In this document: piece after piece, positions 654-53,946 of the stretch | How the letters are laid out: each line of letters begins with the position of its first letter | Position numbering within the stretch: the first letter of the stretch is position 1 | From: Prasinococcaceae sp. CCMP 1430 | Taxonomy: Eukaryota; Plantae; Prasinodermophyta | Reading direction: 5' to 3' | Assembly (NCBI GenBank): GCA_013416795.1 | Contig: RQSC01000125.1 | Coordinates: forward strand, 8,799-72,798 | DNA: 64,000 nucleotides | Notes under the pieces: generated by a model | What the model was told of the DNA's origin: nothing | Databases searched by the model: none | Seen by the model: the letters and a program-made list of their open reading frames with translations, nothing else | Position numbers and translations under genes: made by a program

Positions 654-3356
654 CTAGTTCTGTACCCACACGCACCACTCATCGCCAGACGCGGCGATGT
701 CCCACTTGTTGGACACTTCGCGCGCGCGCTCGTCCATGTGCGGGCTGAAGTCCCCAGGGCCGATCTTGACGATGAGCGCGCCACCGTCAATCATGGCGGC
801 GTAGTGTTCAGCGTCCACGCCCAAAATCTTGACCGACGAGCGCGAGTGAATGCGCAACTTCTTGCGCAGGTCCATGAGCGCAAGAATGCCGCCACGCAGG
901 TTGCCGTCGTACAGATGGTCGGTGAAGACCGTGGGCGTGCCCGGGTGCGTCAGGATGTAGGCGTAGCCTTGCGCAATGCCATGCGACGGGAAGGGCCAGT
1001 GATTGAGCGTGCTGCCCGTGTCGTGGTTGTCGATGAAGGTGACCGCCCTGCTCGGCCAGAAGCCCAGCACACCCGGCGGCCTCCCCGCGGGATCGATGAG
1101 GCGCCAGTACTCACGGCGGCCGATCGCCTCCTGGAGGACGGCCTTGGTGGTGAAGTCGAAGGCTCCGCTGCGACCGCCGGTCGAGTCGATCCAATTGATG
1201 GTGCGCTGCCTGTGCGCGTTCTGGTTGTAGTCGAGCACGCCCTCCGTGTACGAGCACGTGTCCCAGAACTCGCCCACGACCATCTTGGGCGCCGGGTGGG
1301 TGTTGGCGATGTACTCGCCCGTGTATTTGCCCGGGTAGCCCTTGACATAGTCGAAGCGCCATCCCTCGTAGCCGACGTCACTCCGGAGATAGTTGAGCCA
1401 TTCAGAGATGTCCCTCCGCACGGTATCGTTCGTGTGGTCGAGGTTCGGCGCGGCGGTGAAGTTCTCCTCCTCCTTCGCCCTGCCAGTGCCACCGAACATG
1501 CCGGAGTCGGCAGTGATGGCCCACGTGCCCCAGTTCATCCTGCCATGGTACTGGTTCCAGCGTCCCTGGCTGTCCTGCCCTTGCGCGCACCGGTGATTCA
1601 CGACGATGTCCGCCAAAGGAATGATGCCCTCGTCACGCACTGTGTTCAGGCAATCGCGCAGGCTCTGCTCGCTACCGTACTCCGAGTTGAGGTTCCACAG
1701 GTCCCCTGGGAGGTACCCCTGATCGGACACGGACTGTGACGGCGGTGGCAGCCACATCGCGGTGACGCCCTGCCCCGCGATCTCCTTGACCGAGCCCCGC
1801 AGGTTGTCGTAGTAGTTTCCGCGCCAGCTCTCCCAGTTGAACGCCTGCAACAAGATCTCGTAGCCGGTGCCGGTCGCCTGGTAGGCAGGCGCCTCCTCCT
1901 CGACCTCGACAGCCTCCTGCTGGAAGCCCACGGGAGGCGCTTCCGGCGGGGGGGGCGCGACGGGGGGCTCGAGGAGCTCGAGCGGCAGGGCGGGGGCCTC
2001 TTGTGCAGCGGCTGCCGCAATCTTGCTGACTTCGATGCCCTTGATGAGGCGCTGCAGCGCCGCCGCCGCCTCGTCGCTCGCCACCTGCTGCGCGGAGAGG
2101 TTGAGCTCGGCGAACTCGAGCTGGCCTGTGAGCGCCTCGATCTCGTCCTGGAGCGCGCCCGCCTCGACGGCCTCGTTGACCTGCGCCTGCACGGAGTTGA
2201 GCTCTGCCAGGGCCATGTCAGCGGCCGCGAGCGCCGTCCGCGCCTGATCGGCCCTCTCCTTGAGCTCCCTCCTCTCTTTGACGACCGCCGCGCCCTCGTC
2301 GTCCGCGGAGCGGATGAGGTCCTCCGCAACCATAATCTGATCCTTCAGCACGCCCGCCGTTCGCTCGCTCTCGCTGATGGTGCCGATGACGCTCTCGGCG
2401 AGCTGGGCGTCAATCTGCGCGGCCTCCCTGGTGATCGGACCCTCCTCCTGCTCCTTGGTCGACACGGGCGGGGGCTCCATGATCTGATCGCTCCCCGGCA
2501 GCTTGCCAAAGATGGCCGGCATGGTGCTGCGCGAGGTCTTGCGAGGGTTGAGGAGCAGCACGATGACCTGGCGCAGCGCATCGAAGCTCGACTCGGGCAC
2601 CTGCGTGCCGTCCTCCCGCAGGATGTCGAAGGTGTCCACCACCTTCCCCGTCGCGCGATCGGTGCTCACCGACGCGTTGAAGAGGCGCATGCCAAAGGTG
2701 GTCATCTCGGCGATGATCTTGGCGAGCAGCGCGCCCTGGTCGAAGTCCACGGCCACGGTGGATATGGTCAGGCGCGTGAGTCCCTTGGCGCCCATCGCGT
2801 CGTTGCGCAGCTGCACGCTGATGCCCTTGGACGCGTCGTAGATGACCATGCGATCGGTCAGCGCGCGGCGCGTGGCCTTGGGCAGCTGCTTGAAGTCCTC
2901 CTTGAGCAGGTACGCCGCGCGCACGGGCGAGGACGCCCTCACCGTCGCGCCGCGCCGCCTGTCGGTGATCAGCGCGATCTCGCCGAAGTACCCGCCCTTG
3001 CGGTAGCGCATGAGCGGCGAGTTCTCGCCGCCCTTGTCCTCGCGAAAGGCGAACGCCTCGCCCTCCATGAGCATGTAGAAGCGCTCGCCCACGTTGCCCT
3101 GCGTGACGATGTTCTCGCCCGCCTGGAAGTCGGCCACGTACAGCCGGCTGCGCACGAGCTCGACGGCCCTATCGTCGAGCGTGGCGAAGAGCGGCACCGA
3201 GCGCACGAACGAGGAGTCCACGGCGCTCTCGCTGTCGCTCTCGCTCTCGCTGTCGCTGAAGTCGAACCCCGCCGCGGCCGCGATCGGCTTCAGGTGCTTC
3301 TGCTGCCACCACCGCCGCTCCTCGCCGCGCCGCCGCGCCGCCGCGCGCGCGGGCGC
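654..3356 (-). CDS. Alpha-amylase (GH13, plant AMY2/AMY3-like catalytic domain) with N-terminal cNMP-binding domain, ACT-like domain and coiled coil; start uncertain (N at 3357)
   Basis: One uninterrupted ORF. Catalytic motifs GWRFDYVKG, VGEFWD, FIDNHDTGS; also YEILLQAFNWES and DIVVNHRC. cNMP motifs IVTQGNVGERFYMLMEG and GGYFGEIALITDRRRGATVRA. ACT-like DQGALLAKIIAEMTTFGMRLFNASVSTD...VVDTFDI. Confidence 0.92.
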   Translation of the reverse strand, partial: APARAAARRRGEERRWWQQKHLKPIAAAAGFDFSDSESESDSESAVDSSFVRSVPLFATLDDRAVELVRSRLYVADFQAGENIVTQGNVGERFYMLMEGEAFAFREDKGGENSPLMRYRKGGYFGEIALITDRRRGATVRASSPVRAAYLLKEDFKQLPKATRRALTDRMVIYDASKGISVQLRNDAMGAKGLTRLTISTVAVDFDQGALLAKIIAEMTTFGMRLFNASVSTDRATGKVVDTFDILREDGTQVPESSFDALRQVIVLLLNPRKTSRSTMPAIFGKLPGSDQIMEPPPVSTKEQEEGPITREAAQIDAQLAESVIGTISESERTAGVLKDQIMVAEDLIRSADDEGAAVVKERRELKERADQARTALAAADMALAELNSVQAQVNEAVEAGALQDEIEALTGQLEFAELNLSAQQVASDEAAAALQRLIKGIEVSKIAAAAAQEAPALPLELLEPPVAPPPPEAPPVGFQQEAVEVEEEAPAYQATGTGYEILLQAFNWESWRGNYYDNLRGSVKEIAGQGVTAMWLPPPSQSVSDQGYLPGDLWNLNSEYGSEQSLRDCLNTVRDEGIIPLADIVVNHRCAQGQDSQGRWNQYHGRMNWGTWAITADSGMFGGTGRAKEEENFTAAPNLDHTNDTVRRDISEWLNYLRSDVGYEGWRFDYVKGYPGKYTGEYIANTHPAPKMVVGEFWDTCSYTEGVLDYNQNAHRQRTINWIDSTGGRSGAFDFTTKAVLQEAIGRREYWRLIDPAGRPPGVLGFWPSRAVTFIDNHDTGSTLNHWPFPSHGIAQGYAYILTHPGTPTVFTDHLYDGNLRGGILALMDLRKKLRIHSRSSVKILGVDAEHYAAMIDGGALIVKIGPGDFSPHMDERAREVSNKWDIAASGDEWCVWVQN

Positions 3357-3618
3357 NTGGGGGGAGGCGTGCGAGCCCCCCTCGGGGGTCCCGCGCCGCC
3401 GCCGCGCGTCGCAGGGGGGGGGGGAGGGAGGGGCGGAGGCGGCCCGCTGAGGGGCCGCCGCGCCCGTCGAGGCGGGGAAGCGTGCGGTGCGGTGGGTGGG
3501 GTGGGGGGAGGGGAGGGGGGCGCTGTGTGGCACCCTGCCCCGCGCGGCCGCGCCCGCCCGCACGCCTGTCGCCCTAAGCAGGCCCGTGAATAGACAATAA
3601 AAAGAAAAACAAAAAAAA

Positions 3619-3990
3619 TCGTGTGCGATTTGACCTCCGAAGGCCCCGGGCATTTGTGGGGCGTTTTGGGCGGAAAAAAGCCGCCTTTGATTTGATGGTT
3701 CCCAACAGCACCAACAGCCGACGGGCACGCGAAAACAAAAAGAAAAAGAAAAAAGAAAAAGAAAAAAGTTCGTGTGCGATTTGACCTCCGAAAGCCCCCG
3801 CGTTTGTGAGGCGGTTTTCGGCGGCGGGCGTCTGAAACAAAACGGACCGCTTTTGATTTGATGGTTCCCGTCAACAACAGCCGACGGGCACGCGAAAAAA
3901 ACAAAAAAAAAGAAAAATTCGGGTGCGATTTGACCTCCGAAAGCCCCCGCGTTTGCGAGGCGTTTTCGGCGGCGGGCGCCCGGAAAAAGA
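3619..3990. repeat. Three imperfect tandem copies of a ~150-bp unit separated by poly(A)-rich linkers
   Basis: TCG(T/G)GTGCGATTTGACCTCCGAA starts at 3619, 3770 and 3919 (spacing 151 and 149). Copies 1 and 2 share TTTGATTTGATGGTTCCC and CAACAGCCGACGGGCACGCGAAAA. Confidence 0.9.
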
Positions 3991-4265
3991 AAAAAAAGTT
4001 TTGAGGCGTTTTAGGGTTGGGGTTTCTTTTTCTTTTTTTTCTTTTTTTTCCTGTTGTCGTCGTTCGACGGGGATCGGGCCCGCGCGCGCGCGCGCGCGCG
4101 CTCGAGCGCCCCCAAATGCGCCCCTTCCGTAAGATGCTTCGGTCAAAACGCACCTGCACTGCGCGCGATGCCCCTCCCAAACCTCCTCGAAATGCGTCCC
4201 CGAAAAGGCCTCCAAAAGGGCGCGCGGGGAGAGATCCGGCGGCGCGCTTTTGGGGCGCCGGAGCG

Positions 4266-18988: not shown

Positions 18989-21900
18989 TCAGACGGAGCG
19001 GATGAGGACGGCGGGTCCGTCGGTGTCCCCCGTGCTCGGGGCGTTGCTCGGAGCAGAACGACCGGGCGCGCAGGTCGTGCCTGTCGCAGGGCAGTCGGCG
19101 CGGGCTCCTGCAGCAGAGCCCCGGTCGGACACCGGCAGCCCACGCATCGCGCCCCAAGACGGCCCGACCTTCGCCTTGGTAGCCATGCGGGGGGCGTTAG
19201 CGAGCCCGAGCCTGGATGGTGCGCAGATCATCGCGCTCGCGAGGGCCTGCGCCACCCGCGCGGCGTCTGCCTCGGCGCACTCGGCGACCAGCTCGTCGTG
19301 GATGCACAGCACGAGCACCGCCCCAAGTTGCTGCAGCTCTGCCTGCACGTCCACGATGGCCACCTTGACGACGTCAGACAGCGAGCCCTGCACGATCGCC
19401 GAGGCAAGCTGACGGACTCGCTCGCCACGGCTCCCCACCTTCGCCGGGAGCGTCCGCTGCCGGCCACTGACTGTCGACACAAACCCCTTCTGCTCGGCGT
19501 GGTGGGAGGTCGACACGAGCCACTTGAGAGACGTCCCGAAGATGTTGTCGAACGACTGGTCGAACGCCGGCCCGGAACCTGAGGCCGTGCCCAGCGAGTA
19601 CAGGCGGGAGTACACCAGGCGCTTCGCCTCGGCGCGGGCGCACCCGGCGCTGTCCGCCAATTGCTGGAAGATGTCGCAGCCACTCGCGAGAAGGTCACAC
19701 AGCGCGGCGTCGTTTGCCATAGCAGCCAGTACGCGAAGCTCCGCCTCGCTGTAGTCGACGCTGACGAGCACGTTGCCAGGCGAGCGCGCGACGAAGCACG
19801 CGCGCGCGCTCGGATGGCTCGTCGAGCGCGCGGAGTGCTGCCTTTGCACGCACTGCAAGTTGGGGCCCTCGCTCACAAGGCGGCCGGTGGCAGCGGCGCA
19901 CTGCAGCCAGCTGGTGTGAACGCGTTCGACCATTGCGAGTGCTGCGCTGCTGTCGGAGGGCAGCGCGCTGAGGCGCACCGAGCTTGCGGCGCACGTCAGG
20001 TACGAGTCCAAGTTGCCGATGAGCCGCTGGAGCTGCCGCGCCTCCAGCACCAGATCGACAACGCCCTCGGTACACGCCATCTCCTCGAGAACCTCGGAAC
20101 GCGTCGAGATGCGACCCGAACGCAGCTTCGGCGCCCCATCGGGTGGTCTCAAGCGCAGGGGCCTGCCACCGAAGAGCGCGTCAGAGAGGTGCTCGGGTGA
20201 TTCCCATCGCACCTTCTCGCCATTGAATGCGCGCGACAGACTCGCCTCCACTCCGCTGAGGCACTTTCTCGCAGCGGCCCGGCACTTGTCCGCTGCACGC
20301 CCATTGAAGCCAATGCCCTCCTCTTCCATCGACGCCAGCGCGCGAATCAGCGGCATCTCCATGCGGGCGTACGCGGATGCGACGCCGTCGTTGCAGGCGA
20401 AGGCGCGCCGCTGGTGCTCGGCGAGCGCCAGTGCGAGCGCCGCGCGCTCGCACGCGTCGCGCGGCCCGCTCCCCCGCTCGCCAAAGAGTTCGCAGCCGGC
20501 TGTGGCCACTGCGACTGCGAGCCCCTGGTGGCCATCACGTCCACGCCCGTATTCTTCGAGGACCTCCGCGAGTGCCATGGACGTCTCATGTCTCTGGCCG
20601 CCCGCGAGCAGACACTCTGCGATGAGGGTGTCCCGCCAGCCAACGAGACGAGATGCGAGTGCGAGCGGCCGCCCGCACACGCCGAACTCAATGGCGACGA
20701 GCTGCCTGCGCAAGTCCCAGCAGGCACAGCGCACGCCCGCCATCGCAGTGATGTGGTCATGCGAGGCCCCCGCGAGTCGGCGCAGCCCATCGCAGACCAC
20801 CTCCCATCGCTCGCGGACGACGCCAGCTGTCACACCGGACTCAGCATCGAGGCGAAGGCCGATGTACACCTTCAGCACGTCCGCAAACGCTTCGTCGGCC
20901 TGCGTTGTCACGCCAGGCGTCGTTCCGCCTCCCGTTGGGCGCACGAGCGCGATAGCGACCCCTGCAAGCACGCTTCGCGGCGCGCCCTGGCGGCGGTCGG
21001 CGGTGCGAGATTCGACGATGTGGGCTTCGAATCCGAATTCGTTCGACGCTGCCCACAGGCGCGCGAATCCGTCCAGGCCGTCTGGCTCAAAAGCCTCCAC
21101 GTCGCAACACAGCACGTGGCGTGCTGCGTTGGCGCAGATCCGCGCGTGCTCGATGTGGGCTGCCTGTCGGCACGAATAGCTCTCCCACAGCTTCCCTGCT
21201 GCCCGCACGATGCGGGTCGCGAGGGCCTTGAGCGCACGCGTCTTCTGGGGGGGAGCGCGCCCGGAGATCGCAGCGTACACGCGATCACCCCCGGCCCTCG
21301 CTACCCGCTCGATAGAGGTCAACCCCGCTTTGTGGAGGAGGCGCGCGCGGCCCGACTTGACGCCAGGGATCTCGCACAACGCTCGTACCTCCTCATTGCC
21401 ACCGGCGCTCACACGCGGCGCAAGCTTCGTGAGCATCGCCGCGAGACTGTCCAGGGCGATCGACCTGACCCGCATCTGTCGGCATTCTCTGGGGTCCGCC
21501 GCCAGCGCCTCGAACACGCCTCCGAGTGACGTCACACGCATGCCTGCGCTCTCCCTGAGGGCTTCTAGGTCCGGGAGAATGATGTCTGGAAACATTTTGC
21601 GCATGTCTGCCGTCACCTCCTGGACTTCGACGCCCTCGGCGAGGCGAGCGAGCGCGAGCGCAAAGTAAAGCTTGACGGCGGCCCGGGCCGGGCCGCTCGG
21701 AATGTCCGTGCTCGCGGGGACGGCGCCCTTGCCACGCCGAGCTTGGAAGAAGAAGCCCTCGTCGACGCCGAGCGCAATCGCAAGCGCCTTCTCGTGTTTC
21801 GAGAAGGACGAGTCCCACGCCTGATACATACAGTTCCACTGCGTACTCTCCCACCGCACAGCGCAATCCCACGCGATGCCCTCAGGGACCGCCATCCAGC

Positions 21901-24820
21901 AGAGTGCGACCGGTGTGTCAAGCAACTTCAGCTCGACAACTTTTTGGGCGTCCGCTATGGCAGCCAGTATCTGTTCGGGAGACATCGTCGGAGCCCGCGT
22001 CATCGCGGACCCTCGCGAACACGCGACCCAGCGCATCGCGGACTTGTCAAACGCCAGCAGGCGCTGGCGCTCGCACCATCGCAGTGCCTCCACAGCGGTA
22101 TCAGAGGCCACCGACCCTTTGCTTGTCCCACCACCGGTCGCAGCGAGCAGCGTGCACGCCAAGAAAGCCTCAACATCGCTCGCTGTCGCGACCCAGCCAC
22201 CAACGACAGCCTCAAGCACAGCTTGGCGCATTGCTCGGTTTCCGCCTAGAACGGCCTTCGCATTGCGCTTCGACGGACAGGCTAAGGGCTCCGACGCATG
22301 CTGCCTCCGCCCGTCCCGCGCCTCGCGCGCACCTGGCTGTCGCACGCCATCATCAGCGGGCGGCGCAAAGCAGCTTCGGATCGCATCGCCGCCGACGGCG
22401 GTGGCCGAGACCTCGCCCTGCGAGCGAGCGCCGTCCAGAAGCTGCTTGGCGCTCGTGCGTGCGGATGACGGTACAACAACGAAGGCCTCGCCAATCGTGT
22501 CAAAGCCGGCACGTCCAGCTCGGCCGCACATCTGCCTGATGGTAGTCGGGTCGTGCAGATCACGCCCAGCTTTCAACCCCATGATGAGCACCCGACGCGC
22601 TGGGAGGTTGACTCCGGCTGCGAGCGTGGTGGTCGCACACAGAACTCGAATGCCGCCCTGGCGGTAGCCACCCTCGACAACCTTGCGCTCGTCATTCGTG
22701 AGAGCTGAGTTGTGCCAGCCCACACCAGCCTGAATGCATTCTTGCAAGATGTCATCCGCGGTTCCCTGCCTGCCTTGCCCCTGCTGACCGCGCGTGCCAC
22801 CAGCCTTCGGCAGGGCGCTGCGATCGGCGACCTGCAGCTCCTCAAGTGCAGCGTTGCGCGCCTTGTTCGCTTTGTCATCGGAAGGCACTAGCACAGACGG
22901 GTCGACCCGTCGAAGGAGCTCTACCATCCCCTTCGCGAGCTGCCAGCACTTCGCCTTCGTCGGGCAGAAGAGCAGCGCGGCCCCGCCGCCGGAGAGGGTT
23001 TCTTGCACGAGCGCCACCGCGGCCGTCACTTCAGCATCAGCAGCGAGCATGTCTGGACTGCTGCAGCAGTCAATCTGGCGCACAGAACGGTCATCCACCG
23101 GGTCAATGATGTCCACGAATCCCGCCTTGCTCGTGTGTGCGCCCGATGCCTGCTTGAACGCACTCGCAGCACTCGAAGCGCCGGTAGCAGGCCTTATGCT
23201 CAGCGACTGCGTGTAGACGCATATCCACTCTGAAAGGGGCACTGGTCTATCCGAGTCCGTGGCACGAAATGCCGCGCCCCCGAGCCATCGATGGACTGCA
23301 CCCGCGCCAGGGAGCGTTGCGCTCATGCCGACGAGCAGGATATCGGGCGTTTGGCCGTGCTGCTGCTGCTGTCGCCGCCGTGCGCGGTCGAGATCTTTCT
23401 TGGTGTCGGTCGAAGCGGCATCAGCTCCAGCGGTGCCCTCGAGCACAGCTTCTCGGCCGTTGCCGTAGCCTTTCGTTCCTGGCCTTCTTCCGCCGCCGAT
23501 GTACAGCAGCTTGGCCATGAGCAGCTCGCATAGGTGGCCCCTGCTTGGATCGGCGACCATGTGCAGCTCATCCACGACGACGATGCAAAACGTATCGAGC
23601 AAAGTTTTCTCCAGCACGAGCTCGTTGACGAGACCGTTGGCCTTCTCGATGGTCGCAACACACACGGCAGTGCCGCGTTCTGGAGGGCCATGGCCGATTG
23701 CACCGTGGTACGCCTTGACGCCGCGTCCGGTGCCACGAAAGAGGCGCTCGTACTCCTCGACCTTTTCATTCACGAGGCTCACGAAAGGCACGACTACGAG
23801 CGCTGCGCGATTCGTCGCAGACACAGCGCGAAGCAAGATCATGTCGGCCACGATCGACTTTCCTCCGCTGGTTGGCGCCGAGTAGACGAGGTTGCCTCCG
23901 GTGCGCGCTTGCTGCTCGAGGCACGACGCCTGCCAGCGGTGCAGCCGCGGAGAGCCGCCGAGCTTCTTCTCGAAGTACCGGTGCGCGAAGCGTGGCAGGC
24001 CCCACCTGGGGTGGCGTGGGTCGAGCTGTGTGTCATCGTGCCAGTCGAAGCTATTCGTCGTCGCCTGCGAAGAGTGCTGCGCCTGGAAGCCAACGCCGTC
24101 CTCTGACGCCAGCGACACTCGAGAGGGCAGATTCTCCGCGCGCAGAGACTGCACCACGGCGTCGGCCGCCGCATTCGCCACAGCTGCCACGCTCGCATCG
24201 GCAAAGACCGCAACATCGTCGCCATGGCTGGGCACCACACTTCCCCGGCGCGATGTGTCATCAGACTGCCGAGCGACAGTCACCGCTCCCAGCTCGCCGA
24301 GGGCATCCTCAGCCACGCCCACGATCGGAACGGGCAGCGCCTGGCCTGTCGACTCACGGGTTCGCCGAGGTCCTCCCGGTCCTGGCAGCTGTACGCCCTG
24401 TTGGCACGCCGCCACCTCCTGGATCGTCTCATGCGACTGCTGCTGCCCGAGCGGTGGCCGACCCGGCCTGTGCTGCGACGGCGGCTCCGACGCCCGTTGA
24501 TGCAGCCGCTGCGAGCGCGTCTGGTGAGGCTCGACGACCTCTGGCAGCGCGCCGCTCGCGACGCCGAGCGACGCGAGCAGGCCGGGGCGCGGCTCCGCGG
24601 CGCCGACGCGGCCGGGGGCTGGGACGGGAGGCCGATAACCGGGAGGCCGCGCGCCGGGAGCGGGGCGGCGGTGGCCTGGTGTCGCAGGGCGAGGACGGGG
24701 TGGGGGCGGGGAGGCGGGACTGCGGGACGCGCGCGCCGTGTGGCGCCGCTGCTGGCATGCACGCGCGCGAACACAACTCGATTCGTTCAACCTTGTTGTG
24801 GGGGTACACAAAACCTCCAT
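18989..24820 (-). CDS. POLQ: DNA polymerase theta (helicase + family A polymerase), intronless
   Basis: 1943-aa ORF. Helicase: NLVYSAPTSGGKS, VVVDELHM, GMSATL, GWHNSALT, CATTTLAAGVNLPARRV, QMCGRAGRAG. Pol A: TGRLVSEGPNLQ, motif A DYSEAELRVLA, motif B RAEAKRLVY, motif C IHDEL. Confidence 0.93.
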   Translation of the reverse strand: MEVLCTPTTRLNESSCVRARACQQRRHTARASRSPASPPPPRPRPATPGHRRPAPGARPPGYRPPVPAPGRVGAAEPRPGLLASLGVASGALPEVVEPHQTRSQRLHQRASEPPSQHRPGRPPLGQQQSHETIQEVAACQQGVQLPGPGGPRRTRESTGQALPVPIVGVAEDALGELGAVTVARQSDDTSRRGSVVPSHGDDVAVFADASVAAVANAAADAVVQSLRAENLPSRVSLASEDGVGFQAQHSSQATTNSFDWHDDTQLDPRHPRWGLPRFAHRYFEKKLGGSPRLHRWQASCLEQQARTGGNLVYSAPTSGGKSIVADMILLRAVSATNRAALVVVPFVSLVNEKVEEYERLFRGTGRGVKAYHGAIGHGPPERGTAVCVATIEKANGLVNELVLEKTLLDTFCIVVVDELHMVADPSRGHLCELLMAKLLYIGGGRRPGTKGYGNGREAVLEGTAGADAASTDTKKDLDRARRRQQQQHGQTPDILLVGMSATLPGAGAVHRWLGGAAFRATDSDRPVPLSEWICVYTQSLSIRPATGASSAASAFKQASGAHTSKAGFVDIIDPVDDRSVRQIDCCSSPDMLAADAEVTAAVALVQETLSGGGAALLFCPTKAKCWQLAKGMVELLRRVDPSVLVPSDDKANKARNAALEELQVADRSALPKAGGTRGQQGQGRQGTADDILQECIQAGVGWHNSALTNDERKVVEGGYRQGGIRVLCATTTLAAGVNLPARRVLIMGLKAGRDLHDPTTIRQMCGRAGRAGFDTIGEAFVVVPSSARTSAKQLLDGARSQGEVSATAVGGDAIRSCFAPPADDGVRQPGAREARDGRRQHASEPLACPSKRNAKAVLGGNRAMRQAVLEAVVGGWVATASDVEAFLACTLLAATGGGTSKGSVASDTAVEALRWCERQRLLAFDKSAMRWVACSRGSAMTRAPTMSPEQILAAIADAQKVVELKLLDTPVALCWMAVPEGIAWDCAVRWESTQWNCMYQAWDSSFSKHEKALAIALGVDEGFFFQARRGKGAVPASTDIPSGPARAAVKLYFALALARLAEGVEVQEVTADMRKMFPDIILPDLEALRESAGMRVTSLGGVFEALAADPRECRQMRVRSIALDSLAAMLTKLAPRVSAGGNEEVRALCEIPGVKSGRARLLHKAGLTSIERVARAGGDRVYAAISGRAPPQKTRALKALATRIVRAAGKLWESYSCRQAAHIEHARICANAARHVLCCDVEAFEPDGLDGFARLWAASNEFGFEAHIVESRTADRRQGAPRSVLAGVAIALVRPTGGGTTPGVTTQADEAFADVLKVYIGLRLDAESGVTAGVVRERWEVVCDGLRRLAGASHDHITAMAGVRCACWDLRRQLVAIEFGVCGRPLALASRLVGWRDTLIAECLLAGGQRHETSMALAEVLEEYGRGRDGHQGLAVAVATAGCELFGERGSGPRDACERAALALALAEHQRRAFACNDGVASAYARMEMPLIRALASMEEEGIGFNGRAADKCRAAARKCLSGVEASLSRAFNGEKVRWESPEHLSDALFGGRPLRLRPPDGAPKLRSGRISTRSEVLEEMACTEGVVDLVLEARQLQRLIGNLDSYLTCAASSVRLSALPSDSSAALAMVERVHTSWLQCAAATGRLVSEGPNLQCVQRQHSARSTSHPSARACFVARSPGNVLVSVDYSEAELRVLAAMANDAALCDLLASGCDIFQQLADSAGCARAEAKRLVYSRLYSLGTASGSGPAFDQSFDNIFGTSLKWLVSTSHHAEQKGFVSTVSGRQRTLPAKVGSRGERVRQLASAIVQGSLSDVVKVAIVDVQAELQQLGAVLVLCIHDELVAECAEADAARVAQALASAMICAPSRLGLANAPRMATKAKVGPSWGAMRGLPVSDRGSAAGARADCPATGTTCAPGRSAPSNAPSTGDTDGPAVLIRSV

Positions 24821-30369: not shown

Positions 30370-30636
30370 AGGGCGGCGGACACCCACCCTGCCGCGATCG
30401 GCACACACACACGCCCGCCCACCGCGCGAACGCCGGCACCCGGAGCTGCCAGCCGATCCACTCACACACCGCAGCGTCGATCCGACCGCACGCCCCTGCC
30501 GCGCCGAAGCGTGGCACCTCCCCCAACTCCACCCCCTCGTCCTCGAGTGGGACCTCCACCACCTCCAGCTCCCCCTCCTCCTCGGCGTCGTCGCCCTCGC
30601 CCCATCACAGACGAGACGGGGTTCGTTTCGAGCGTG

Positions 30637-30685
30637 AGTTTAGGTTGAAAAACGGGGGTTTGAGGTTTGGGGTGTAGGGTTAATG
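30637..30685 (+). repeat. Degenerate telomere-like (TTTAGGG-type) repeats
   Basis: GAGTTTAGGTTGAAAAACGGGGTTTGAGGTTTGGGGTGTAGGGTTAATG. Confidence 0.55.
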
Positions 30686-31319
30686 TCCTCTCGAGCTCCT
30701 AGTGGCAAAATTCTCGGATGAGGGGTGGAAAGGAGTGAAAGGCTTACCAAGCCTGGTGATAGCTGGTTCTCCGCGAAATCTATGTAGGTAGACTAGACCC
30801 AGACTCCTTTTCGGAGGTAGAGCACTTGTTGGATGACGGGAGCCCAAACCTTTACGAAGTCCAAGAAAACTCCGAAGGCCGACAAAGGGTGGGTATCTGT
30901 ACAGACTCTGGGCGCGAAGGTCCAGGGTCGAGAGGGGAAGAGCCCAGACCGTCCGTTAAGGTCCCAAAGTGTGCCCTGAGTGCGCAAGGAAGTCAGAAAA
31001 CAGAGACATTCAGGAGATGGGCTTGGAAGCAGCCGTTCTATGATGATCGCGTACCAGCGCACTGAATGAGTTTTTTGGCGCCGACCATACTCGGGACTGA
31101 AGGGCACCACCGAAACGACGGAGAACGATTCGTTCTGGTAGCGGAGCGTCCTGTGTTCCTTTGAAGGAAAAAGGATACTTTTTCTGGAGGACTCGGGAGT
31201 GAGCATGCTGACATGAGTAACGAGGCTCGGGGAGCCAATCCCCGTCGCCGTATGCGCACGGGTTCCACAGCACTGTTGACCATCTGTGGAAGACACGGAT
31301 CCTAAGAAGATGAGAGAAG
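30686..31319 (+). rRNA. Fragment of organellar/bacterial-type LSU rRNA (domain II including the GTPase-associated centre), probably mitochondrial (NUMT or assembly chimera)
   Basis: Colinear 23S landmarks: GTGAAAGGC..CCAAG..TGGTGATAGCTGGTTCTCCGCGAAATCTAT, GGTAGAGCACT, AAACTCCGAA, GTCGAGAGGGGAAGAGCCCAGACC..TAAGGTCCC, GGCTTGGAAGCAGCC, ATGCTGACATGAGTAACGA. Markedly lower GC than the flanks. Confidence 0.92.
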
Positions 31320-31320
31320 N

Positions 31321-43150: not shown

Positions 43151-44039
43151 ATCTCAACATCACAGATCAGTATTCAGCAGGGCGATTGCGCGGAGTCGCT
43201 CGACTCGCGCGAATCTCAGCTCATGCGCGGTGTCCGAAAAGGGATTTGGCGCTGGCCTCAGGCATGCGCAGACATGGCCAGTTTACGTACTCATGGCTGC
43301 GAAAAAGGAGCGAAATTTCTCTTGCGCGAGTTGGGGGCGACGGCGGGCGACGCGGGGCCTCCCGCGGGCCGAAAAAACGCCCGGAATTTCGCGCGCGCGC
43401 CCTCCGCGATACTCGTCGCGGGCGGTGGCCCGCACATGCAAACTTTTCGTCGCCGTTTCCATGGGTAATTCAAGAAATGTTTTTGTTAGGGGCTCGGGAC
43501 AGGGATTTAGATTTAAAATCCCCGGTTCGGGAAGGCTCCGAACCGGGCTGTAAGGTAAAACCTCCTTTAGGCACACGTGACTACTTGCTGATCCACCGGT
43601 CTCTTCCGACCGCCCGACCGACCGACCTGCGGGGACCCCGCGGGTCTACACCGCAACAGCCTCCTCCCAGGCGGGGAACCTTCCCCCCCTCCAACCCCAT
43701 CAAATCGAGTGCGCGCGTCGCCTGTGCCTCGAAAAAATACGCAAATTATCTGGGATATCCGCGCGAAGTGGCACCGGAAGGCGACGTTAGACCGGGTGTC
43801 TTCGCCGGATGAATTCGAATACATCGGGTTTAGTTAGGAGAAGAGGGGGGAAATGGAAGCGCGCGCGCGCGCGCGCGCGCCTCAGAGCGCGCACGCAGCG
43901 GCGCGCGCGCGGCGGCGCCGCGCTCGCGCTCGGACCTCCCAGGCTCATCCACGCACGCACGCACGCACGCACACACACCACAGCGACCACACACACCTCC
44001 CCCCCCATTCCCTCGCGGGACCCCTGGGGGTCGGCCGCG

Positions 44040-45371
44040 ATGTCGTCGTTTCAGCCGCCGCCGGGATGGGGAGCGCCTCCGCAGCAGCCGCAGCAGGGGC
44101 AGCAGCAGCAGCAGCCGGCGCACTGGCAGCAGCAACAGGCGCAGCCGCAGCAGGGGCAACAGCTGCAGCAGCGCTACCAGGCTCAGCCGCAGCAGCGCTA
44201 CCAGGCTCAGCCGCAGCACGCGCAGCATCAGCAGCAGCAGCAGCCAGGCTACGGCGCGGGGGGATACGGGTCGTCGGCTGCGCCGGCGGTACCTTCGGGG
44301 GCGATGGATCCGACGGCGGGCGTCTCGGGCGGTGCGTGCGCCAGGCCCCCGCACGCGCGACGAGGAGAGCGCTCTCGCGCCACTGCCGCCTGCCGCTGCG
44401 CGCTGGCCCGCGGACCTAACCGAGCGCGCGCGCGCGCGCCCGCCCCGCCTCCCATGCCCGCGCCCGGCCGCTCTCGTGCTGACGTGCGCGTCCCCGCAGA
44501 AGACCTCGGCGCGGCCGCGACCGCGATGGGCGCCAACCCCGTCGCTGCCGGCCTGCTCGGCTCGTACGGCGAGCGGCTCATGGGCTCCGTGAAGACCAAC
44601 GTGAGCAGCAACTGGCTGGTGCGCTACGTGGCGGGCGTCGAGTTCACCGAGTACTTCGCCGTCGACGCCGCCTACTTGCGACGCAAGCTGAAAATGGTGC
44701 TGCTGCCCTTCGCGCATCGCGGCAGCTGGTCGCGCCTGTGCGACGGCGTGGCCGGCGGGCTGCGCTTCAAGTCGCCGCGCGAGGACGTCAACGCGCCCGA
44801 CTTGTACCTGCCGCTGATGGCGATGTGCGCGCACTGCGTGCTGCGCGCGGCGGCGCTCGGAGTAGAGGGGGAGATGGCACACGCGGCGGCGGCCGCCGCA
44901 CACGCAGCGCATGCAGCGACGCACGGCGAGCTCGCCGTCGATGGGGACCTCGCGACCGCGCACTTTTACGCAGACGTCAAGCGCTTCAACCCGAGCGTCA
45001 TGTCCGACGGCTTCAACAAGGCCATGTTCTGGTGGGTGGCGCAGGCCTTCGCGCTCAAGGCGACGGTGTACGTGCTCGGATCGCAGCAGCTTCCCCTCAA
45101 GGTGGCGTTCATGGACCTGATGGCCTACACGGGCTACATCTTCGTGGGCATCGCGCTGTCGGGGCTGCTGCGGCCAATGGGCGCGCTCGTGTACCGCGGA
45201 GTGCTGCTCTACTCTGCGGTGATGTGCGCGCTGTTCCTCCTTCGCACCCTCAAGCGGGCGGCGCTGTGGGGTGGTGCACACCAGGGCGCGGTGGACGCTG
45301 CCAAGGTCAACTACGTGCTGCTGTGCGCGGCCGCCGCACAGGTCGCCATGGTGTGGCTGATGAGCTACTAG
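44040..45371 (+). CDS. YIF1: YIF1/Hrf1-family ER-Golgi membrane protein with Gln-rich N-terminus; intron 44332-44499
   Basis: YFAVDAAYLRRKLKMVLLPF, PREDVNAPDLYLPLMA, DLMAYTGYIFVG, several hydrophobic helices; canonical intron with GCTGAC branch site. Confidence 0.92.
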   Translation: MSSFQPPPGWGAPPQQPQQGQQQQQPAHWQQQQAQPQQGQQLQQRYQAQPQQRYQAQPQHAQHQQQQQPGYGAGGYGSSAAPAVPSGAMDPTAGVSGGACARPPHARRGERSRATAACRCALARGPNRARARAPAPPPMPAPGRSRADVRVPAEDLGAAATAMGANPVAAGLLGSYGERLMGSVKTNVSSNWLVRYVAGVEFTEYFAVDAAYLRRKLKMVLLPFAHRGSWSRLCDGVAGGLRFKSPREDVNAPDLYLPLMAMCAHCVLRAAALGVEGEMAHAAAAAAHAAHAATHGELAVDGDLATAHFYADVKRFNPSVMSDGFNKAMFWWVAQAFALKATVYVLGSQQLPLKVAFMDLMAYTGYIFVGIALSGLLRPMGALVYRGVLLYSAVMCALFLLRTLKRAALWGGAHQGAVDAAKVNYVLLCAAAAQVAMVWLMSY

Positions 45372-45650: not shown

Positions 45651-46494
45651 TCAGCGGTTCTTGTGCTTGTTCTGCGTGTGCTCCTCTCGCGCCTTCTTGA
45701 TCTCGCGGTCGACGCGGAGCAGCTCCGTTGCGCGCGCGTACTTGCGCGGGTGGCGGCGCACGAGTGCCAGCAGGTCATTCACGTGCACCTTGCCCTCCTC
45801 GGCGCCGATCTCTGCCGCCTTCTGCGTCATCTCGAGGATGTACTCGATGCAAATCTCCTCCACCACGTCGACGGTCTCTTTGAGCGGATCGGCGTCGTCG
45901 CCATAGCCGTACATGATGCGCCGCACTGCGTGGGCAGGTGGGGTAGGGCGGGGAACGTGGCGCACGGTCAGTAGTGGGGGGCGGTTATGGCGCTTCGGAA
46001 GGAGCGCGCGGGGCGCCAGCGCGAGGAGGGCGCCCGGCGGTGCGTGTGGCGACTCGAAGCTGAGTTGGGGTGGCGCACGGGGAGAGCCATGATCACCGCA
46101 AGCTCGAGCTCCCGCGCTTTCATGTGCGCGCTCGCGCGGGCGGGCGGCGGCGCGCACAGGAGCTTCGGCCGCGCTGGGCGCAGCGCCACCACTCACAGTC
46201 CTCAGTGAATATCCCTCGCTTCTTCTTCAGCGCGAACTCCTCCCATCGCTTCTTCTCCGCCTCGGGATCGAGCGGCGCGTCCGCGGCTGCTGCGGCGCCG
46301 CCCGCCGCACCGCCCGCCGAGCGCTTGCCGGGGGAGGCGGCCACACGCTGCGCGCGCGGCGCACGCCGCGCCCCACCTGCGCGCGGCGCCCGCTGCGAGC
46401 CGCGGCCTGCCGAGTGATCCCTCGCTCCGACTCCTCCTCCTCCCCCCTCTGGCCGCTTCCCCGCCCGCACCTCCCCCCCCCCACCGCGCATCAT
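45651..46494 (-). CDS. TAF13: Transcription initiation factor TFIID subunit 13; intron 45926-46196
   Basis: Spliced KKKRGIFTED|LRRIMYGYGDDADPLKETVDVVEEICIEYI...DLLALVRRHPRKYARATELL. The only in-frame upstream ATGs seen are at 46491 and 46494. Confidence 0.88.
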
Positions 46495-47877
46495 GGAGAT
46501 GCACCACAAGCTCCGCCGCGACAAGAGCTGGTCCATCCACGGCTGCAACACGTGCGGCCAGGAGGGCCACCAGGCGGCGAACTGCCCGAACGGCTCCAAC
46601 GACTTCAAGGCTCTCGGCTTCGACTACCACGTCTACGAGAGCATCAAGGTGAGCGCCGCGAGCGCGCAGGGCCGGCGCTCGTGCGCTCGCTTCCTCGCTC
46701 GCGCACGCGCTCGCGCCCCGCGCGCGACCTGCTCACCAGCTGCGTGCGTGGCTGGCCTGCGCCCGAGCGACGACGGCTCGCCGCTGACACGCGCACATGC
46801 GTGGACTGCGCCAACGCGCTCGCGATTGTCCTGCGGCCATCGCGTCCCCGCTCTCGGGCGCGCTCTCGCATGGCTCGACGCTCGGTTGTCTCTCCCTCCT
46901 TTGCCTCTTGCGCTCGCGCCTGCGCAGCCAAAGCTGAAGGTCGACTTCGAGACGCTCGAGGCGCGAGCCAGGGCGTATGCGGCGGCGATGGGCAAGACAG
47001 ACGACCCAGCCGTCGCGGCGCAGGCGGCCGCGGACGTGTTGCCCGCGGCGCTGGACGAGTCCAAGGGCGGGGGCTGGAAGTCGGACGTCGACTTCGCAAC
47101 GGGGCGGCGCTACTGGTACAACGAGCTCACGTGCGAGAGCCGCTGGCACCCACCGCAGCTCCAGCCGACGCAACCACAGCTGCTGCCCGTGCCAGGCGCT
47201 GCGCAGGTGCAGGCCGAGGCGGGCGCGGCCACCGCGGCCGCGGCGGCGCTCCCGCCGCCCGCGATGCCGCCCCCCGCGNNNNNNNNNNNNNNNNNNNNNN
47301 NNNNNNNNNNNNNNNNNNNNNNNNNNNNNNNNNNNNNNNNNNNNNNNNNNNNNNNNNNNNNNNNNNNNNNNNNNNNNNNNNNNNNNNNNNNNNNNNNNNN
47401 NNNNNNNNNNNNNNNNNNNNNNNNNNNNNNNNNNNNNNNNNNNNNNNNNNNNNNNNNNNNNNNNNNNNNNNNNNNNNNNNNNNNNNNNNNNNNNNNNNNN
47501 NNNNNNNNNNNNNNNNNNNNNNNNNNNNNNNNNNNNNNNNNNNNNNNNNNNNNNNNNNNNNNNNNNNNNNNNNNNNNNNNNNNNNNNNNNNNNNNNNNNN
47601 NNNNNNNNNNNNNNNNNNNNNNNNNNNNNNNNNNNNNNNNNNNNNNNNNNNNNNNNNNNNNNNNNNNNNNNNNNNNNNNNNNNNNNNNNNNNNNNGGCGC
47701 GCTGCGCGCGCGGCGGCCGCCGCACAGCGCTCCGCAGAGGCGGCGTCTGCCGCGCGCGCGGCGCTCGCAGCGGCTGATGCTGAGCGCGACGAGCTGCGCG
47801 CTTGGCTCGGCGACGCCGCGTGCGGGACGCTCGGAGAGGTGCGCGCCGCTTGCGCTCGTCAGCGCCTGGCGCGCTGA
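46493..47877 (+). CDS. CCHC zinc-knuckle + WW-domain protein; intron 46649-46927; spans a gap
   Basis: CNTCGQEGHQAANC (CX2CX4HX4C) and GWKSDVDFATGRRYWYNELTCESRWHPP (WW). The post-gap segment ending at 47877 is assigned tentatively. Confidence 0.8.
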
Positions 47878-48057
47878 TGCGCAGGCGCCGCGCGACAGGC
47901 GCTGAATCGCTCGCCAGGGGCCTCGCCGGAGCGCTGACGGCGTCCTTGCGACAACCCGCTCACCCACCTCGCTCCACGACAGGGTCCCGCGGCTGCCGAC
48001 GCCGACGGGCATGCCCATGCCCACGCGTACGCGCATGTTGCGCACGCGGGCGTCCCC

Positions 48058-51599: not shown

Positions 51600-53723
51600 T
51601 CACTCGTCGCGCGCCATTGCGACGGGGTCGGTGACGAGGGCCGTCGTGGAGTGCCGGGGCGCCGCCCGGGCGCGCGGGTGGAGGGCCTCGGGCATGTTGC
51701 TGCACGAGCGCCTGTCCCGGTGCGCGGCGGGGTCCCTTGAGACGCTCCGGCGTGAGGGAGAGGCGCCATTTTCCCCCTGAGTCTGCGCGAAGGCGCGTGC
51801 AGCCCCCGCGTGACACAGGTCGTTCAAGCGCATCTGCCCGCCGTTTTGAGCCTCCTCCACGGACATGCGCGCAGACGCCGATGAGAGCGAGGTGCGGGTG
51901 TCGCTGACCAGCCGGAGCGGCGACTCCATGCGCGAGTTGCGAGGCTGCCGGCCGAGGGCAACGCCGGCGACCAAACCGCCTCCAGAGGGTGGATTCCCCG
52001 CGCTTGCTGATGGGCGAAGGCTGGGCGCGGGCGCCGACACTTCCGGCCCCGCGAGGGCCGCGGCAAAGTCGGGGACCTGGCGCACGGGCACGGCGCCGTG
52101 CGCCTCGCCTTTGCCGTCACTCGTGCTGACCTTGCGCAACCCACCCGAGGACGGCCGGTCACGCGAGCGCCGCGGCTGTGGGTGAGACGGGTGCGAGAAT
52201 GTCTTCGAGCGCGTGAGGTCCTGCGCATCCATCGGCGGACGCCCAGGATGCGCTCCGGTGACGTTGCCCTCCGCTGCGATCGCGCCGCTGGATTGCCGGC
52301 GGTGCCGGCGTGCCGCGCCCTCGCTCCTCCCGTTCGCGTGTGGAGCGTTAGCGTCCCGCAGGCGCGCGTCCCCGTTTCGGCGATGTGTGGGCGCTCGGCG
52401 TATCGGTATCGCCTTGTGCGAGTCCGGCGCCAAGGGCATTTCGATCGGATCCGCCATGCGCGTCCCCCGCGAGAAGTACCCGTGCGCCAGCGCCTCGCCG
52501 GCGCTGCTCCGGCGACTCGAGTCGTACGACATCAGCGCGCGCACCAAGGCCACGGTGGGGGCCTCGAGGCCTTTCTCGCGCAGCACGCTCTCCAACCTGT
52601 CGGGATACGAGCTGGGCGGCCGCATGAGCATCGCGTCGCGCGCGTAGCCCGAACGCGCCATCGAGTCCCAATAAGACTCCGGAGGCGTGCCGCACAGCTT
52701 CCATATTCGATGCAGCTGCTCCACCTCGGTTCTGCCAGGGAGCATTGGCCGCCCCACGACGAGCTCAGCCAGCATCGCGCCCACGCTCCACATGTCAACC
52801 TCGGAGCCGTACCTTGTCTTGCCCAGAAGCAGCTCGGGGGGGCGGTACCACAGGGTGATCACGCGGGTTGTCAGTGGTCTCAGCATCGTCTCAGACGCGT
52901 CGAGCTGGACGGCCAGCCCGAAATCGGCGATTTTGAGCTCGCCTTGGTTGTTCACGAGCAGGTTAGACGCCTTGAGGTCCCTGTGGCACACGCCCATAGA
53001 GTGGATGTACTCGAGCCCCCGCAGCAGCTGCAGCATGTAACGTTTGATCTGGCCTTCGGTCACGGCCGACCCGCGCGTGCTCCCCATGAGCGCCTGCAGG
53101 TCGTGCGGCAGGTACTCGAAGATGAGATACAGCGCGTTGGGCTTTCTGCTGGCAACCACTGCGCGCAGCTCGACGATGTTCTCGTGGCGCAGCCGCGTCA
53201 GGATTCGCACCTCGCGGCTTATGAACGCGAGCGCCTCGGCGTCGAACGGATCGAATTGCACCCTCTTCAGAGCGACCACTTCGCCTGAGGCTCGGTCCAC
53301 GCCCTTGTACACGATTGAATACGTCCCCTCTCCGATCTTGGCGACTCGTTCGAAGTCGTCAATGGAGCGCAGCGGCTGCCGTCGCGACGCGGCCACCTGG
53401 CGCGCCAGCGAGGCGAGCCAGCGTGGCCAGCGCGACACATCGGCGTCCAGCATGGGCGCCACCTTGCTCATGCTCCCGCCAGCGCCGTTGCTGCCGCTTC
53501 CCGGCCGGCTCCCCCCGCTGCTGCTGAAGCTGTTTCGCCGGCTGCCCGCGCGGCTGCTTTCATGACTGCTCGGGTGGCTCCCTTGGCCATCGCCCCCAGC
53601 CGCAGAGAAGCGCTGCTTTTCGCCCTGCCAGGTTCCCACGTGAGCGGCTTGCTCCTTCCCCGGCCTCTCTGCATGCTGCTCGTCGCGCACATGCGCTGCG
53701 GCCCCGGACGCGCAGTTTCCCAT
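51600..53723 (-). CDS. Cyclin-dependent kinase-like Ser/Thr kinase (plant CDKC/CKL-like) with MGNCAS lipidation motif
   Basis: WPRWL, KIGEGTYSIVY, VALKRV, REVRIL, FEYLPHDL, HRDLKASNLL, KIADFGLA, VITLWYRPPELLLG, DMWSVG, EVEQLHRIWKLCGTP. Confidence 0.94.
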   Translation of the reverse strand: MGNCASGAAAHVRDEQHAERPGKEQAAHVGTWQGEKQRFSAAGGDGQGSHPSSHESSRAGSRRNSFSSSGGSRPGSGSNGAGGSMSKVAPMLDADVSRWPRWLASLARQVAASRRQPLRSIDDFERVAKIGEGTYSIVYKGVDRASGEVVALKRVQFDPFDAEALAFISREVRILTRLRHENIVELRAVVASRKPNALYLIFEYLPHDLQALMGSTRGSAVTEGQIKRYMLQLLRGLEYIHSMGVCHRDLKASNLLVNNQGELKIADFGLAVQLDASETMLRPLTTRVITLWYRPPELLLGKTRYGSEVDMWSVGAMLAELVVGRPMLPGRTEVEQLHRIWKLCGTPPESYWDSMARSGYARDAMLMRPPSSYPDRLESVLREKGLEAPTVALVRALMSYDSSRRSSAGEALAHGYFSRGTRMADPIEMPLAPDSHKAIPIRRAPTHRRNGDARLRDANAPHANGRSEGAARRHRRQSSGAIAAEGNVTGAHPGRPPMDAQDLTRSKTFSHPSHPQPRRSRDRPSSGGLRKVSTSDGKGEAHGAVPVRQVPDFAAALAGPEVSAPAPSLRPSASAGNPPSGGGLVAGVALGRQPRNSRMESPLRLVSDTRTSLSSASARMSVEEAQNGGQMRLNDLCHAGAARAFAQTQGENGASPSRRSVSRDPAAHRDRRSCSNMPEALHPRARAAPRHSTTALVTDPVAMARDE

Positions 53724-53946
53724 CGCGCGCGCGGGCAGGCGTGCCCCTCCTTCGGCGACCAGCATCAGGAGGCAGTCATGGCGAAGCTCATTGCACCTTG
53801 AGCCTCGACCAGGCCGATGGCATCAACTCGGAGGCGCTGGTGGCGCTGCCAGAGGCGCCGGCCCGGCCTTCGTGTTCGCGGCCGACGGCGCCGCCGAGCA
53901 GCCGAGCGAGCCACCGGCCAACAGACGTGAGGCAGGTAGGACACGC

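Follow-up and report, generated by a model that had tools for sequence, protein, structure and literature searches.

The amylase locus

The present analysis concerns a gene for a predicted alpha-amylase on the minus strand of a 64,000-nucleotide stretch of DNA from Prasinococcaceae sp. CCMP 1430 (contig RQSC01000125.1, positions 8,799 to 72,798), referred to here as the window and having a GC content of ~68%. A minus-strand reading frame is open from position 3728 to the stop codon at 654-656, its sole interruption being a single N at 3357. The codons below this N, from 3356 down, give a 900-aa translation in which a cyclic-nucleotide-binding (CNB) domain, an ACT-like domain, a helical region and a GH13 amylase domain follow one another. 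Residues are numbered in that translation (window:657-3356, minus strand), codon 1 being the first after the N. From the 5' side of the gene onward, the features are as follows.

3358 to 3728, minus strand: upstream continuation of the open frame, coding status doubtful
3357: single N, one of seven single-N positions in the window, which may mark an assembly join
3216 to 3356, minus strand: stretch preceding the CNB domain, including an acidic SDSESESDSES run; maybe partly intron or linker
2838 to 3215, minus strand: CNB domain, aa 48-173 (Pfam, PDB matches, AlphaFold2)
2934 to 2993, minus strand: phosphate-binding cassette GYFGEIALITDRRRGATVRA, aa 122-141
2979 to 2981, minus strand: cassette Glu126, ribose-contacting position
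2952 to 2954, minus strand: cassette Arg135, phosphate-contacting position
2550 to 2822, minus strand: ACT-like domain (AlphaFold2, hhalign, family Pfam matches)
2505 to 2549, minus strand: linker with the motif TSRSTMPAIFG between ACT-like domain and stalk (alignments A1, A4 and A5)
1998 to 2429, minus strand: three long alpha-helices (stalk), aa 310-350, 356-398 and 403-453 (AlphaFold2)
657 to 1862, minus strand: GH13 plant-type alpha-amylase with C-terminal beta domain, aa 499-900, followed by the stop at 654-656
1350 to 1352, minus strand: catalytic nucleophile Asp669 in GWRFDYVKG, invariant in alignment A1
1269 to 1271, minus strand: general acid/base Glu696 in VGEFWD, invariant in alignment A1
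1020 to 1022, minus strand: transition-state stabiliser Asp779 in FIDNHDTGS, invariant in alignment A1

Pfam, the AlphaFold2 model and profile comparison agree that all four modules lie in one frame in the order CNB, ACT-like, three helices, GH13, and the domain limits proposed in an earlier note on this DNA match the AlphaFold2-based limits within ~30 nt. That note had also described an intron-free frame, a description that is valid for the CNB domain and everything after it up to the stop codon; no start codon was located. The GC content at third codon positions (GC3) is 0.86-1.0 throughout the CNB-to-amylase coding region.

Domain architecture of the predicted amylase

The CNB domain is recognised by the Pfam family cNMP_binding (aa 77-158, E 1.5e-15, 57.4 bits against a curated cut-off of 27.5), and the match spans profile positions 4-85 of 89. 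An AlphaFold2 model computed from a 70-row alignment (mean predicted local distance difference test score, pLDDT, of 78) gives its strands and helices a pLDDT of about 86-97, and they form the beta-barrel with flanking helices of PF00027. The cassette Glu and Arg noted earlier are indeed retained (FGEIAL...RRRGATVRA, with Glu126 and Arg135). Both are also kept in the orthologue and in a paralogue from Prasinoderma singulare described below, where PRGATVRA is found as well (P0001 and P0188/P0327, respectively), and all three Prasinoderma proteins have Gly directly after the cassette Arg. Among solved structures, the best relatives are the CNB domains of PKG and PKA-R in the PDB, and the nearest database relatives are eukaryotic CNB-kinase(-PP2C) proteins with 40-44% identity. 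The domain keeps every sequence feature needed for binding of a cyclic nucleotide monophosphate (cNMP), from which we infer binding itself. According to the model, its C-terminal helix enters ACT strand 1 after ~5 residues.

The ACT-like domain was compared with a profile of the N-terminal domain of AMA2-type amylases, built from 45 chlorophyte sequences with Prasinoderma excluded, and hhalign returned a probability of 99.0% (E 5e-18). On the strength of this match it is homologous to the AMA2 N-terminal ACT domain, and together with the AlphaFold2 model the match places the domain in frame where it had been expected. Within the family, 27 of 48 members match the bHLH ACT-like and 18 of 48 the ACT entries of Pfam, and PF26956 is precomputed on many AMA2-type matches. 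Searching PDB sequences with the ACT-family profile gave marginal matches only (the Rel ACT domain 6lxg, E 1.3e-3; 1zpv, E 0.03). A conserved Leu (DQGALL) and a conserved Phe (VDTFDIL), whose columns are invariant or nearly so in the family alignments, are present in the window protein and, judging by motif position, appear to correspond to Leu110 and Phe141 of Chlamydomonas reinhardtii AMA2 (CrAMA2). The linker that follows has the family consensus SSRSSxPAIYG, of which P, I and G are invariant. What had been taken for a coiled coil is modelled by AlphaFold2 as a three-helix stalk (271-311, 317-359 and 364-414 in model numbering); it gives a weak Pfam match to the ATG16 coiled coil and aligns with the helical region of AMA2-type amylases.

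The GH13 domain matches the Pfam families Alpha-amylase (E 1.5e-11) and Alpha-amyl_C2 (at about 666-854, E 7.7e-15) as well as the barley AMY1/AMY2 sequences (E about 1e-109). Foldseek superposes it on the barley AMY1 structures 1rp8/1ht6 with a template modelling (TM) score of 0.87, the model pLDDT being mostly >85, and both the TIM-barrel and the C-terminal beta-sheet are found (Pfam, Foldseek). The domain is intact, with all three catalytic acids as read earlier, in motifs that align with barley AMY1. With the motifs and fold of GH13, the protein is a predicted plant-type alpha-amylase.

Occurrence and selection

The rarity of the fusion was assessed in ~5.8 billion proteins, residues 44-290 being scored on the length-compatible ones, and in 1.84 billion representatives, against which the CNB + ACT segment was run exhaustively with HMMER. 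Across both searches, the CNB-ACT-amylase combination was found in one other cluster only. Its representative, P0001 (803 aa), originates from Tara and other marine metagenomes and shows 64% identity over 95% of the query and 69% in the N-terminal module. The same cluster holds UniRef A0A7S3F620 (P0320), 'alpha-amylase, Prasinoderma singulare', an open reading frame (ORF) derived from an MMETSP transcript and called from an internal Met. The earlier note had asked for a single transcript across the domains, and in the sister species P0320 shows one mRNA that covers the gene from within the CNB domain, ahead of the cassette, as far as the amylase stop. In both species no break in the frame separates the domains. 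No published description of a CNB-amylase was found in our literature search. The fusion is rare and uncharacterised, its sequences being already in public databases, and the CNB domain is the new part relative to AMA2-type amylases.

A codon-level comparison of the window with the P. singulare contig L001 gave the following nonsynonymous (dN) and synonymous (dS) divergences.

48 CNB codons before the first in-frame Met: dN 0.24, dS 1.32
rest of the CNB domain: dN 0.25, dS 0.80
ACT-like domain: dN 0.27, dS 0.97
helical stalk: dN 0.50, dS 0.92
GH13: dN 0.21, dS 0.85

In the two CNB parts, in the ACT-like domain and in GH13, the dN/dS ratio lies at about 0.18-0.31. All domains are under purifying selection of similar strength, and this extends to the CNB codons that precede the first in-frame Met.

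A SET-fused paralogue in P. singulare

The exhaustive search also returned P0179 and P0188, which are 51-56% identical to the CNB + ACT segment of the window protein. Their cluster contains UniRef A0A7S3BC10, a 'SET domain-containing protein, P. singulare', and its longest member, P0327, comprises a CNB domain, an ACT-like domain, the PAIFG motif, a helical region and a SET domain of the SETD3/LSMT class, with 50% identity to the window protein over 230 aa. The gene is spliced: an intron of 127 nt (GTGCGT...CACAG, L002:273-399) inside the CNB region is present in L002 (1-2867) and precisely missing from L003 (1-996) and from P0327, and there is probably a second one before 'DREVERV'. Since one N-terminal module is carried by an amylase and by a SET enzyme, it may be regarded as a regulatory cassette attached to two unrelated catalytic domains in the genus.

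The 5' end of the gene

The stretch between N3357 and the CNB domain is poorly kept in P. singulare, with 2 of 19 aligned residues identical. Its SDSESESDSES run is the product of a 6-nt tandem repeat (CGCTCT, 5.7 copies) at 3224-3257, and the acidic repeat is absent from the orthologue. Beyond the N, positions 3358-3557 are of low complexity with ~85% GC, and no ATG occurs in any frame across 3357-3650. The only in-frame ATG of the upstream continuation, at 3651-3653, falls within the third copy of a tandem repeat, and the 32 codons from it down to 3558 have a GC3 of ~0.5. This repeat consists of three copies of ~150 bp at 3571-4010, directly upstream of the amylase frame, each with a core GTGCGATTTGACCTCCGAA, an A-rich tract and a CCGACGGGCACGCG segment; the core has three matches against 0.01 expected and none elsewhere in the window. 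At another of the single Ns, position 13321, the GC3 phase differs between the two sides, and single Ns may hide joins of unstated length. Given this shift, continuity across N3357 cannot be assumed.

One candidate for the beginning of the gene was rejected: reading N3357 as T creates an ATG in the wrong frame, from which translation meets a stop. An upstream minus-strand ORF at 4528-4283 was considered as a first exon; it offers a possible GTAGGG donor in phase 2, and the AG acceptors before the CNB domain are all in phase 0.

In P. singulare, a TGA stands in frame 22 codons ahead of the CNB domain, and prokaryote-style gene callers use a GTG start for the gene. A candidate first exon runs from an ATG at L007:59 to CAG/GTGCGC (phase 0), encoding 39 aa rich in Ala and Arg, and a phase-0 acceptor CGCAG/GCT with a CTGAC branch site lies just before the CNB domain. 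The candidate exon, branch site and acceptor are present in four independent P. singulare contigs, from which L004 and L015 differ in their upstream sequence. A 5' intron in the amylase gene is likely, and from these sequence signals a 5' intron preceded by a transit-peptide-like first exon is plausible. A plastid location, as access to starch would require, is presumed for the enzyme.

At least three versions of the sequence upstream of the P. singulare gene occur among the metagenome contigs (L004:2750-3370 versus L007:1-770 and L015:1-450). L006-L009 mutually agree there, L004 turns into a divergent NACHT-WD40 gene upstream of a GTGCGTACG site, and L015 has a different segment of ~220 nt. 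Five Logan contigs (L010-L014) share their first base, at 273 nt before the called start; this common edge could reflect the end of a transcript or a break in coverage.

Proposed mechanism and alternative explanations

The ACT-domain alpha-amylase AMA2 of C. reinhardtii (Cre08.g362450) has been characterised biochemically (Scholtysek et al., 2024; PMC11190351). In AlphaFold dimer models of CrAMA2, three helices join the ACT domain to the amylase; the enzyme elutes as a dimer, and deletion of its N-terminus yields a monomer that is 2.8-fold more active (PMC11190351). It was also demonstrated that L-Gln activates the full-length enzyme only, to 168% of control with a half-maximal effective concentration of 2.1 mM, that changes of L110 or F141 alter this response, and that cGMP, cAMP and other nucleotides leave activity unaffected (PMC11190351). 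AMA2 and 14 other Chlamydomonas starch enzymes were nevertheless retained on cGMP beads, though they have neither a CNB nor a GAF domain and no nucleotide affected them directly; indirect binding via CNB-containing kinases was the authors' proposal (PMC11190351).

For the window protein, we consider it reasonably probable that it is a two-input enzyme in which a cyclic nucleotide and nitrogen status together adjust alpha-glucan hydrolysis. In this lineage, a CNB domain of PKA/PKG type would have been added directly before the ACT domain of an AMA2-type amylase. By homology with AMA2, the ACT-like domain and the stalk would bring two subunits together and hold back or tune the catalytic domain, and Gln would be the probable activator, acting via the ACT-like domain; on this analogy, dimerisation and Gln activation are most likely also in the window enzyme. 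cAMP or cGMP would bind the cassette through Glu126 and Arg135, and binding would shift the hinge/lid helix, a movement that is typical of CNB domains. Since this helix is only ~5 residues from ACT strand 1, the movement could pass directly to the ACT domain and stalk, alter their conformation and thereby the restraint of the catalytic domain by the N-terminal region, so that second messenger and nitrogen status would jointly set the rate of starch (alpha-glucan) hydrolysis. The data show the architecture, its intact motifs and its conservation in a second species, together with purifying selection on every domain and a single mRNA in the sister species; allosteric control exerted directly by cAMP or cGMP is what we infer from the sequence, from which neither the sign of the cNMP effect nor the preferred nucleotide is predictable.

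A number of points weigh against this reading. Apart from the ATG in the upstream tandem repeat, no in-frame ATG was found ahead of the CNB domain in the window, nor was one found in P. singulare, and it is on this N-terminus that targeting, and with it access to starch and to a cNMP pool, would depend. The Gly after the cassette Arg, in place of the Ala of PKA or the Thr/Ser of PKG, makes the nucleotide preference unreadable from the sequence. On its own, the ACT-like segment of the window matches none of the Pfam ACT families at threshold, and the best PDB fold match of an ACT-only model, the ACT-like domain of GL3, is weak (E 5.6e-3, TM 0.62). Finally, the indifference of CrAMA2 to cNMPs implies that the catalytic/ACT core has no intrinsic response to them.

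The last of these points would also fit a first alternative, namely that the CNB domain is a ligand-insensitive CNB-homology domain or a binder of another ligand, serving as an extra dimerisation or autoinhibitory module, with control exerted only via ACT and redox as in AMA2. CNB-like folds without cNMP binding exist, for example in KCNH channels, and the Gly found in all three Prasinoderma proteins is atypical. However, FGE..AL and R-x-A-T-V are intact in the cassette, including the two ligand-contacting residues, whereas known non-binding CNB-homology domains are typically without the cassette Arg. The near-complete Pfam match (positions 4-85 of 89, E 1.5e-15) and the purifying selection on the domain in two enzymes and two species also count against this alternative, which we regard as unlikely.

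It is also conceivable that the CNB domain binds cNMP but controls localisation, partner binding or assembly, for example on starch granules or in a complex, and not catalysis. The capture of 15 Chlamydomonas starch enzymes, including AMA2, on cGMP beads without a direct effect on activity suggests cNMP-linked complexes, and targeting would fit the presence of the module on an unrelated SET enzyme as well as allostery does. Yet the very short CNB-ACT connection and the known autoinhibitory/activating N-terminus of AMA2 favour direct conformational coupling, and no interaction motif was identified in the protein. We therefore hold this explanation to be quite improbable.

An artefact of the gene model or of translation, with a start at the internal Met (YMLMEGE) in the CNB barrel or the CNB domain on a separate transcript, would agree with the missing ATG, the TGA of P. 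singulare, the internal-Met call of P0320 and the GTG start needed by prokaryote-style callers, but it is very improbable, as the 48 codons before that Met have a dN/dS of ~0.18 and a GC3 of ~1.0, 18 of their 31 identical residues are written with different codons, the homologous stretch of the SET paralogue is part of its spliced coding sequence, and introns with a GTGCG donor and a CTGAC branch site exist in the lineage, with a phase-compatible candidate upstream exon in four P. singulare contigs.

The allosteric, two-input reading may be extended further. As a tentative proposal, about which we are rather doubtful, CNB, ACT and stalk could make up a portable two-input cassette (cyclic nucleotide, amino acid) placed on at least two unrelated Prasinodermophyta enzymes, an alpha-amylase and a SETD3/LSMT-class methyltransferase, which would let a second messenger govern the mobilisation of carbon stores without a kinase and explain the cGMP-bead capture of AMA2 and 14 other starch enzymes in Chlamydomonas.

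Significance

Few eukaryotic effectors of cAMP and cGMP are known, namely PKA, PKG, the CNG/HCN channels, Epac and GAF-domain phosphodiesterases, and the action of cyclic nucleotides on plant and algal metabolism is still debated. If the reading is true, a CNB domain fused in frame to a starch-degrading enzyme would be a direct, kinase-free cNMP effector. The system would be simple to probe: a colorimetric assay on a single recombinant protein, with two ligands to try. The presence of a CNB domain on an AMA2 orthologue in an early-diverging green lineage would also provide 'Rosetta-stone' support for a functional link between cNMP and amylase, and independent evolutionary support for the association of cGMP with starch enzymes in Chlamydomonas (PMC11190351), while the SET fusion suggests a reusable sensor cassette. 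Should the CNB domain be ligand-dead, the finding would shrink to a lineage-specific decoration of a known enzyme.

Genomic context

The genes of the window are long single-ORF eukaryotic genes, which points to nuclear DNA of an intron-poor eukaryote. An exact look-up of nine ORFs of the window returned none of them from the protein collection; judging by its nearest relative, P. singulare, and by GC content (69.8% is reported for P. coloniale), the DNA most probably belongs to a Prasinoderma-like green alga. The following genes were recognised outside the amylase locus.

18989 to 24820, minus strand: PolQ-like helicase with family-A polymerase, 1943 aa
36777 to 37886, plus strand: UCH-type deubiquitinase
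43809 to 45371, plus strand: YIF1
46493 to 47905, plus strand: zinc-knuckle and WW protein, broken by an N run
51600 to 53765, minus strand: Ser/Thr protein kinase

Several other ORFs of >300 aa in the window are without a Pfam match and may be spurious frames driven by GC content. No tRNAs were found in the window. It contains 13 N runs, of which the single Ns are at 3357, 10446, 11746, 13321, 31320, 34841 and 55106 and the longer ones (65-543 N) at 7063, 28935, 33035, 47279, 59754 and 61568; apparent low-GC 'islands' in coarse composition profiles are mostly N runs. A 575-nt match to bacterial-type large-subunit ribosomal RNA (30634-31208, plus strand; model positions 623-1297, 334 bits) has a GC content of ~0.52-0.55 against 0.72-0.80 in its flanks, with the single N at 31320 downstream. 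The segment appears to be either organellar rDNA (plastid or mitochondrial) inserted into the nuclear genome or a contaminant of the assembly.

Comparison with known systems

The CNB domains of PKA-R and PKG (Plasmodium PKG CNB-B, 5ezr/4rz7; bovine RI-alpha, 1rgs) share with the window protein the beta-barrel and the FGE-x-AL...R-x-A-T-V cassette, with per-domain E values down to 2e-10. The window protein differs in having a single CNB domain and not a tandem pair, and in the Gly after the cassette Arg, where PKA typically has Ala and PKG typically Thr/Ser. After its CNB domain come an ACT-like domain and a glycoside hydrolase, whereas those of PKA-R and PKG are followed by kinase or inhibitor sequence. 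The CNB-ACT-helix-SET protein of P. singulare resembles the window amylase in its N-terminal CNB domain, ACT-like domain, PAIFG motif and helical region; its output, however, is a SETD3/LSMT-class methyltransferase and not an amylase, and its gene has at least one confirmed intron in the CNB region.

Plant plastidial AMY3 has the plant-type GH13 domain in common with the window protein (42-46% identity), and both carry a long N-terminal regulatory extension. In the legume AMY3 matches this extension carries PF23166, the modules of which we take to be carbohydrate-binding, while the window protein has CNB and ACT-like domains instead. PF23166 is absent from the 900-aa product in Pfam, in line with the distinction from AMY3 drawn in the earlier note, and we know of no ACT or CNB domain in AMY3.

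The closest comparison is with CrAMA2 and its chlorophyte orthologues. Our search of 5.8 billion proteins revealed ~100 green-algal amylases of 620-770 aa with a common ACT-helix-amylase layout; they can be aligned to the window protein from the ACT-like domain as far as the C-terminus (covering up to 80% of the query, with 40-47% identity). This layout is the widespread chlorophyte AMA2 type and is already known. The earlier suggestion of an oligomeric enzyme with a metabolite sensor thus describes a known kind of amylase, the CNB addition alone being new, and the statement that no enzyme of this architecture had been characterised fails for the ACT part, of which CrAMA2 is an example, but stands for the CNB-amylase within the literature searched. 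Over the region in common, Leu and Phe are apparently placed at the L110 and F141 positions of CrAMA2. The window protein is distinguished from the AMA2 type by four extra residues in the first ACT hairpin and a first helix of greater length, and above all by a complete CNB domain before the ACT domain, which CrAMA2 lacks.

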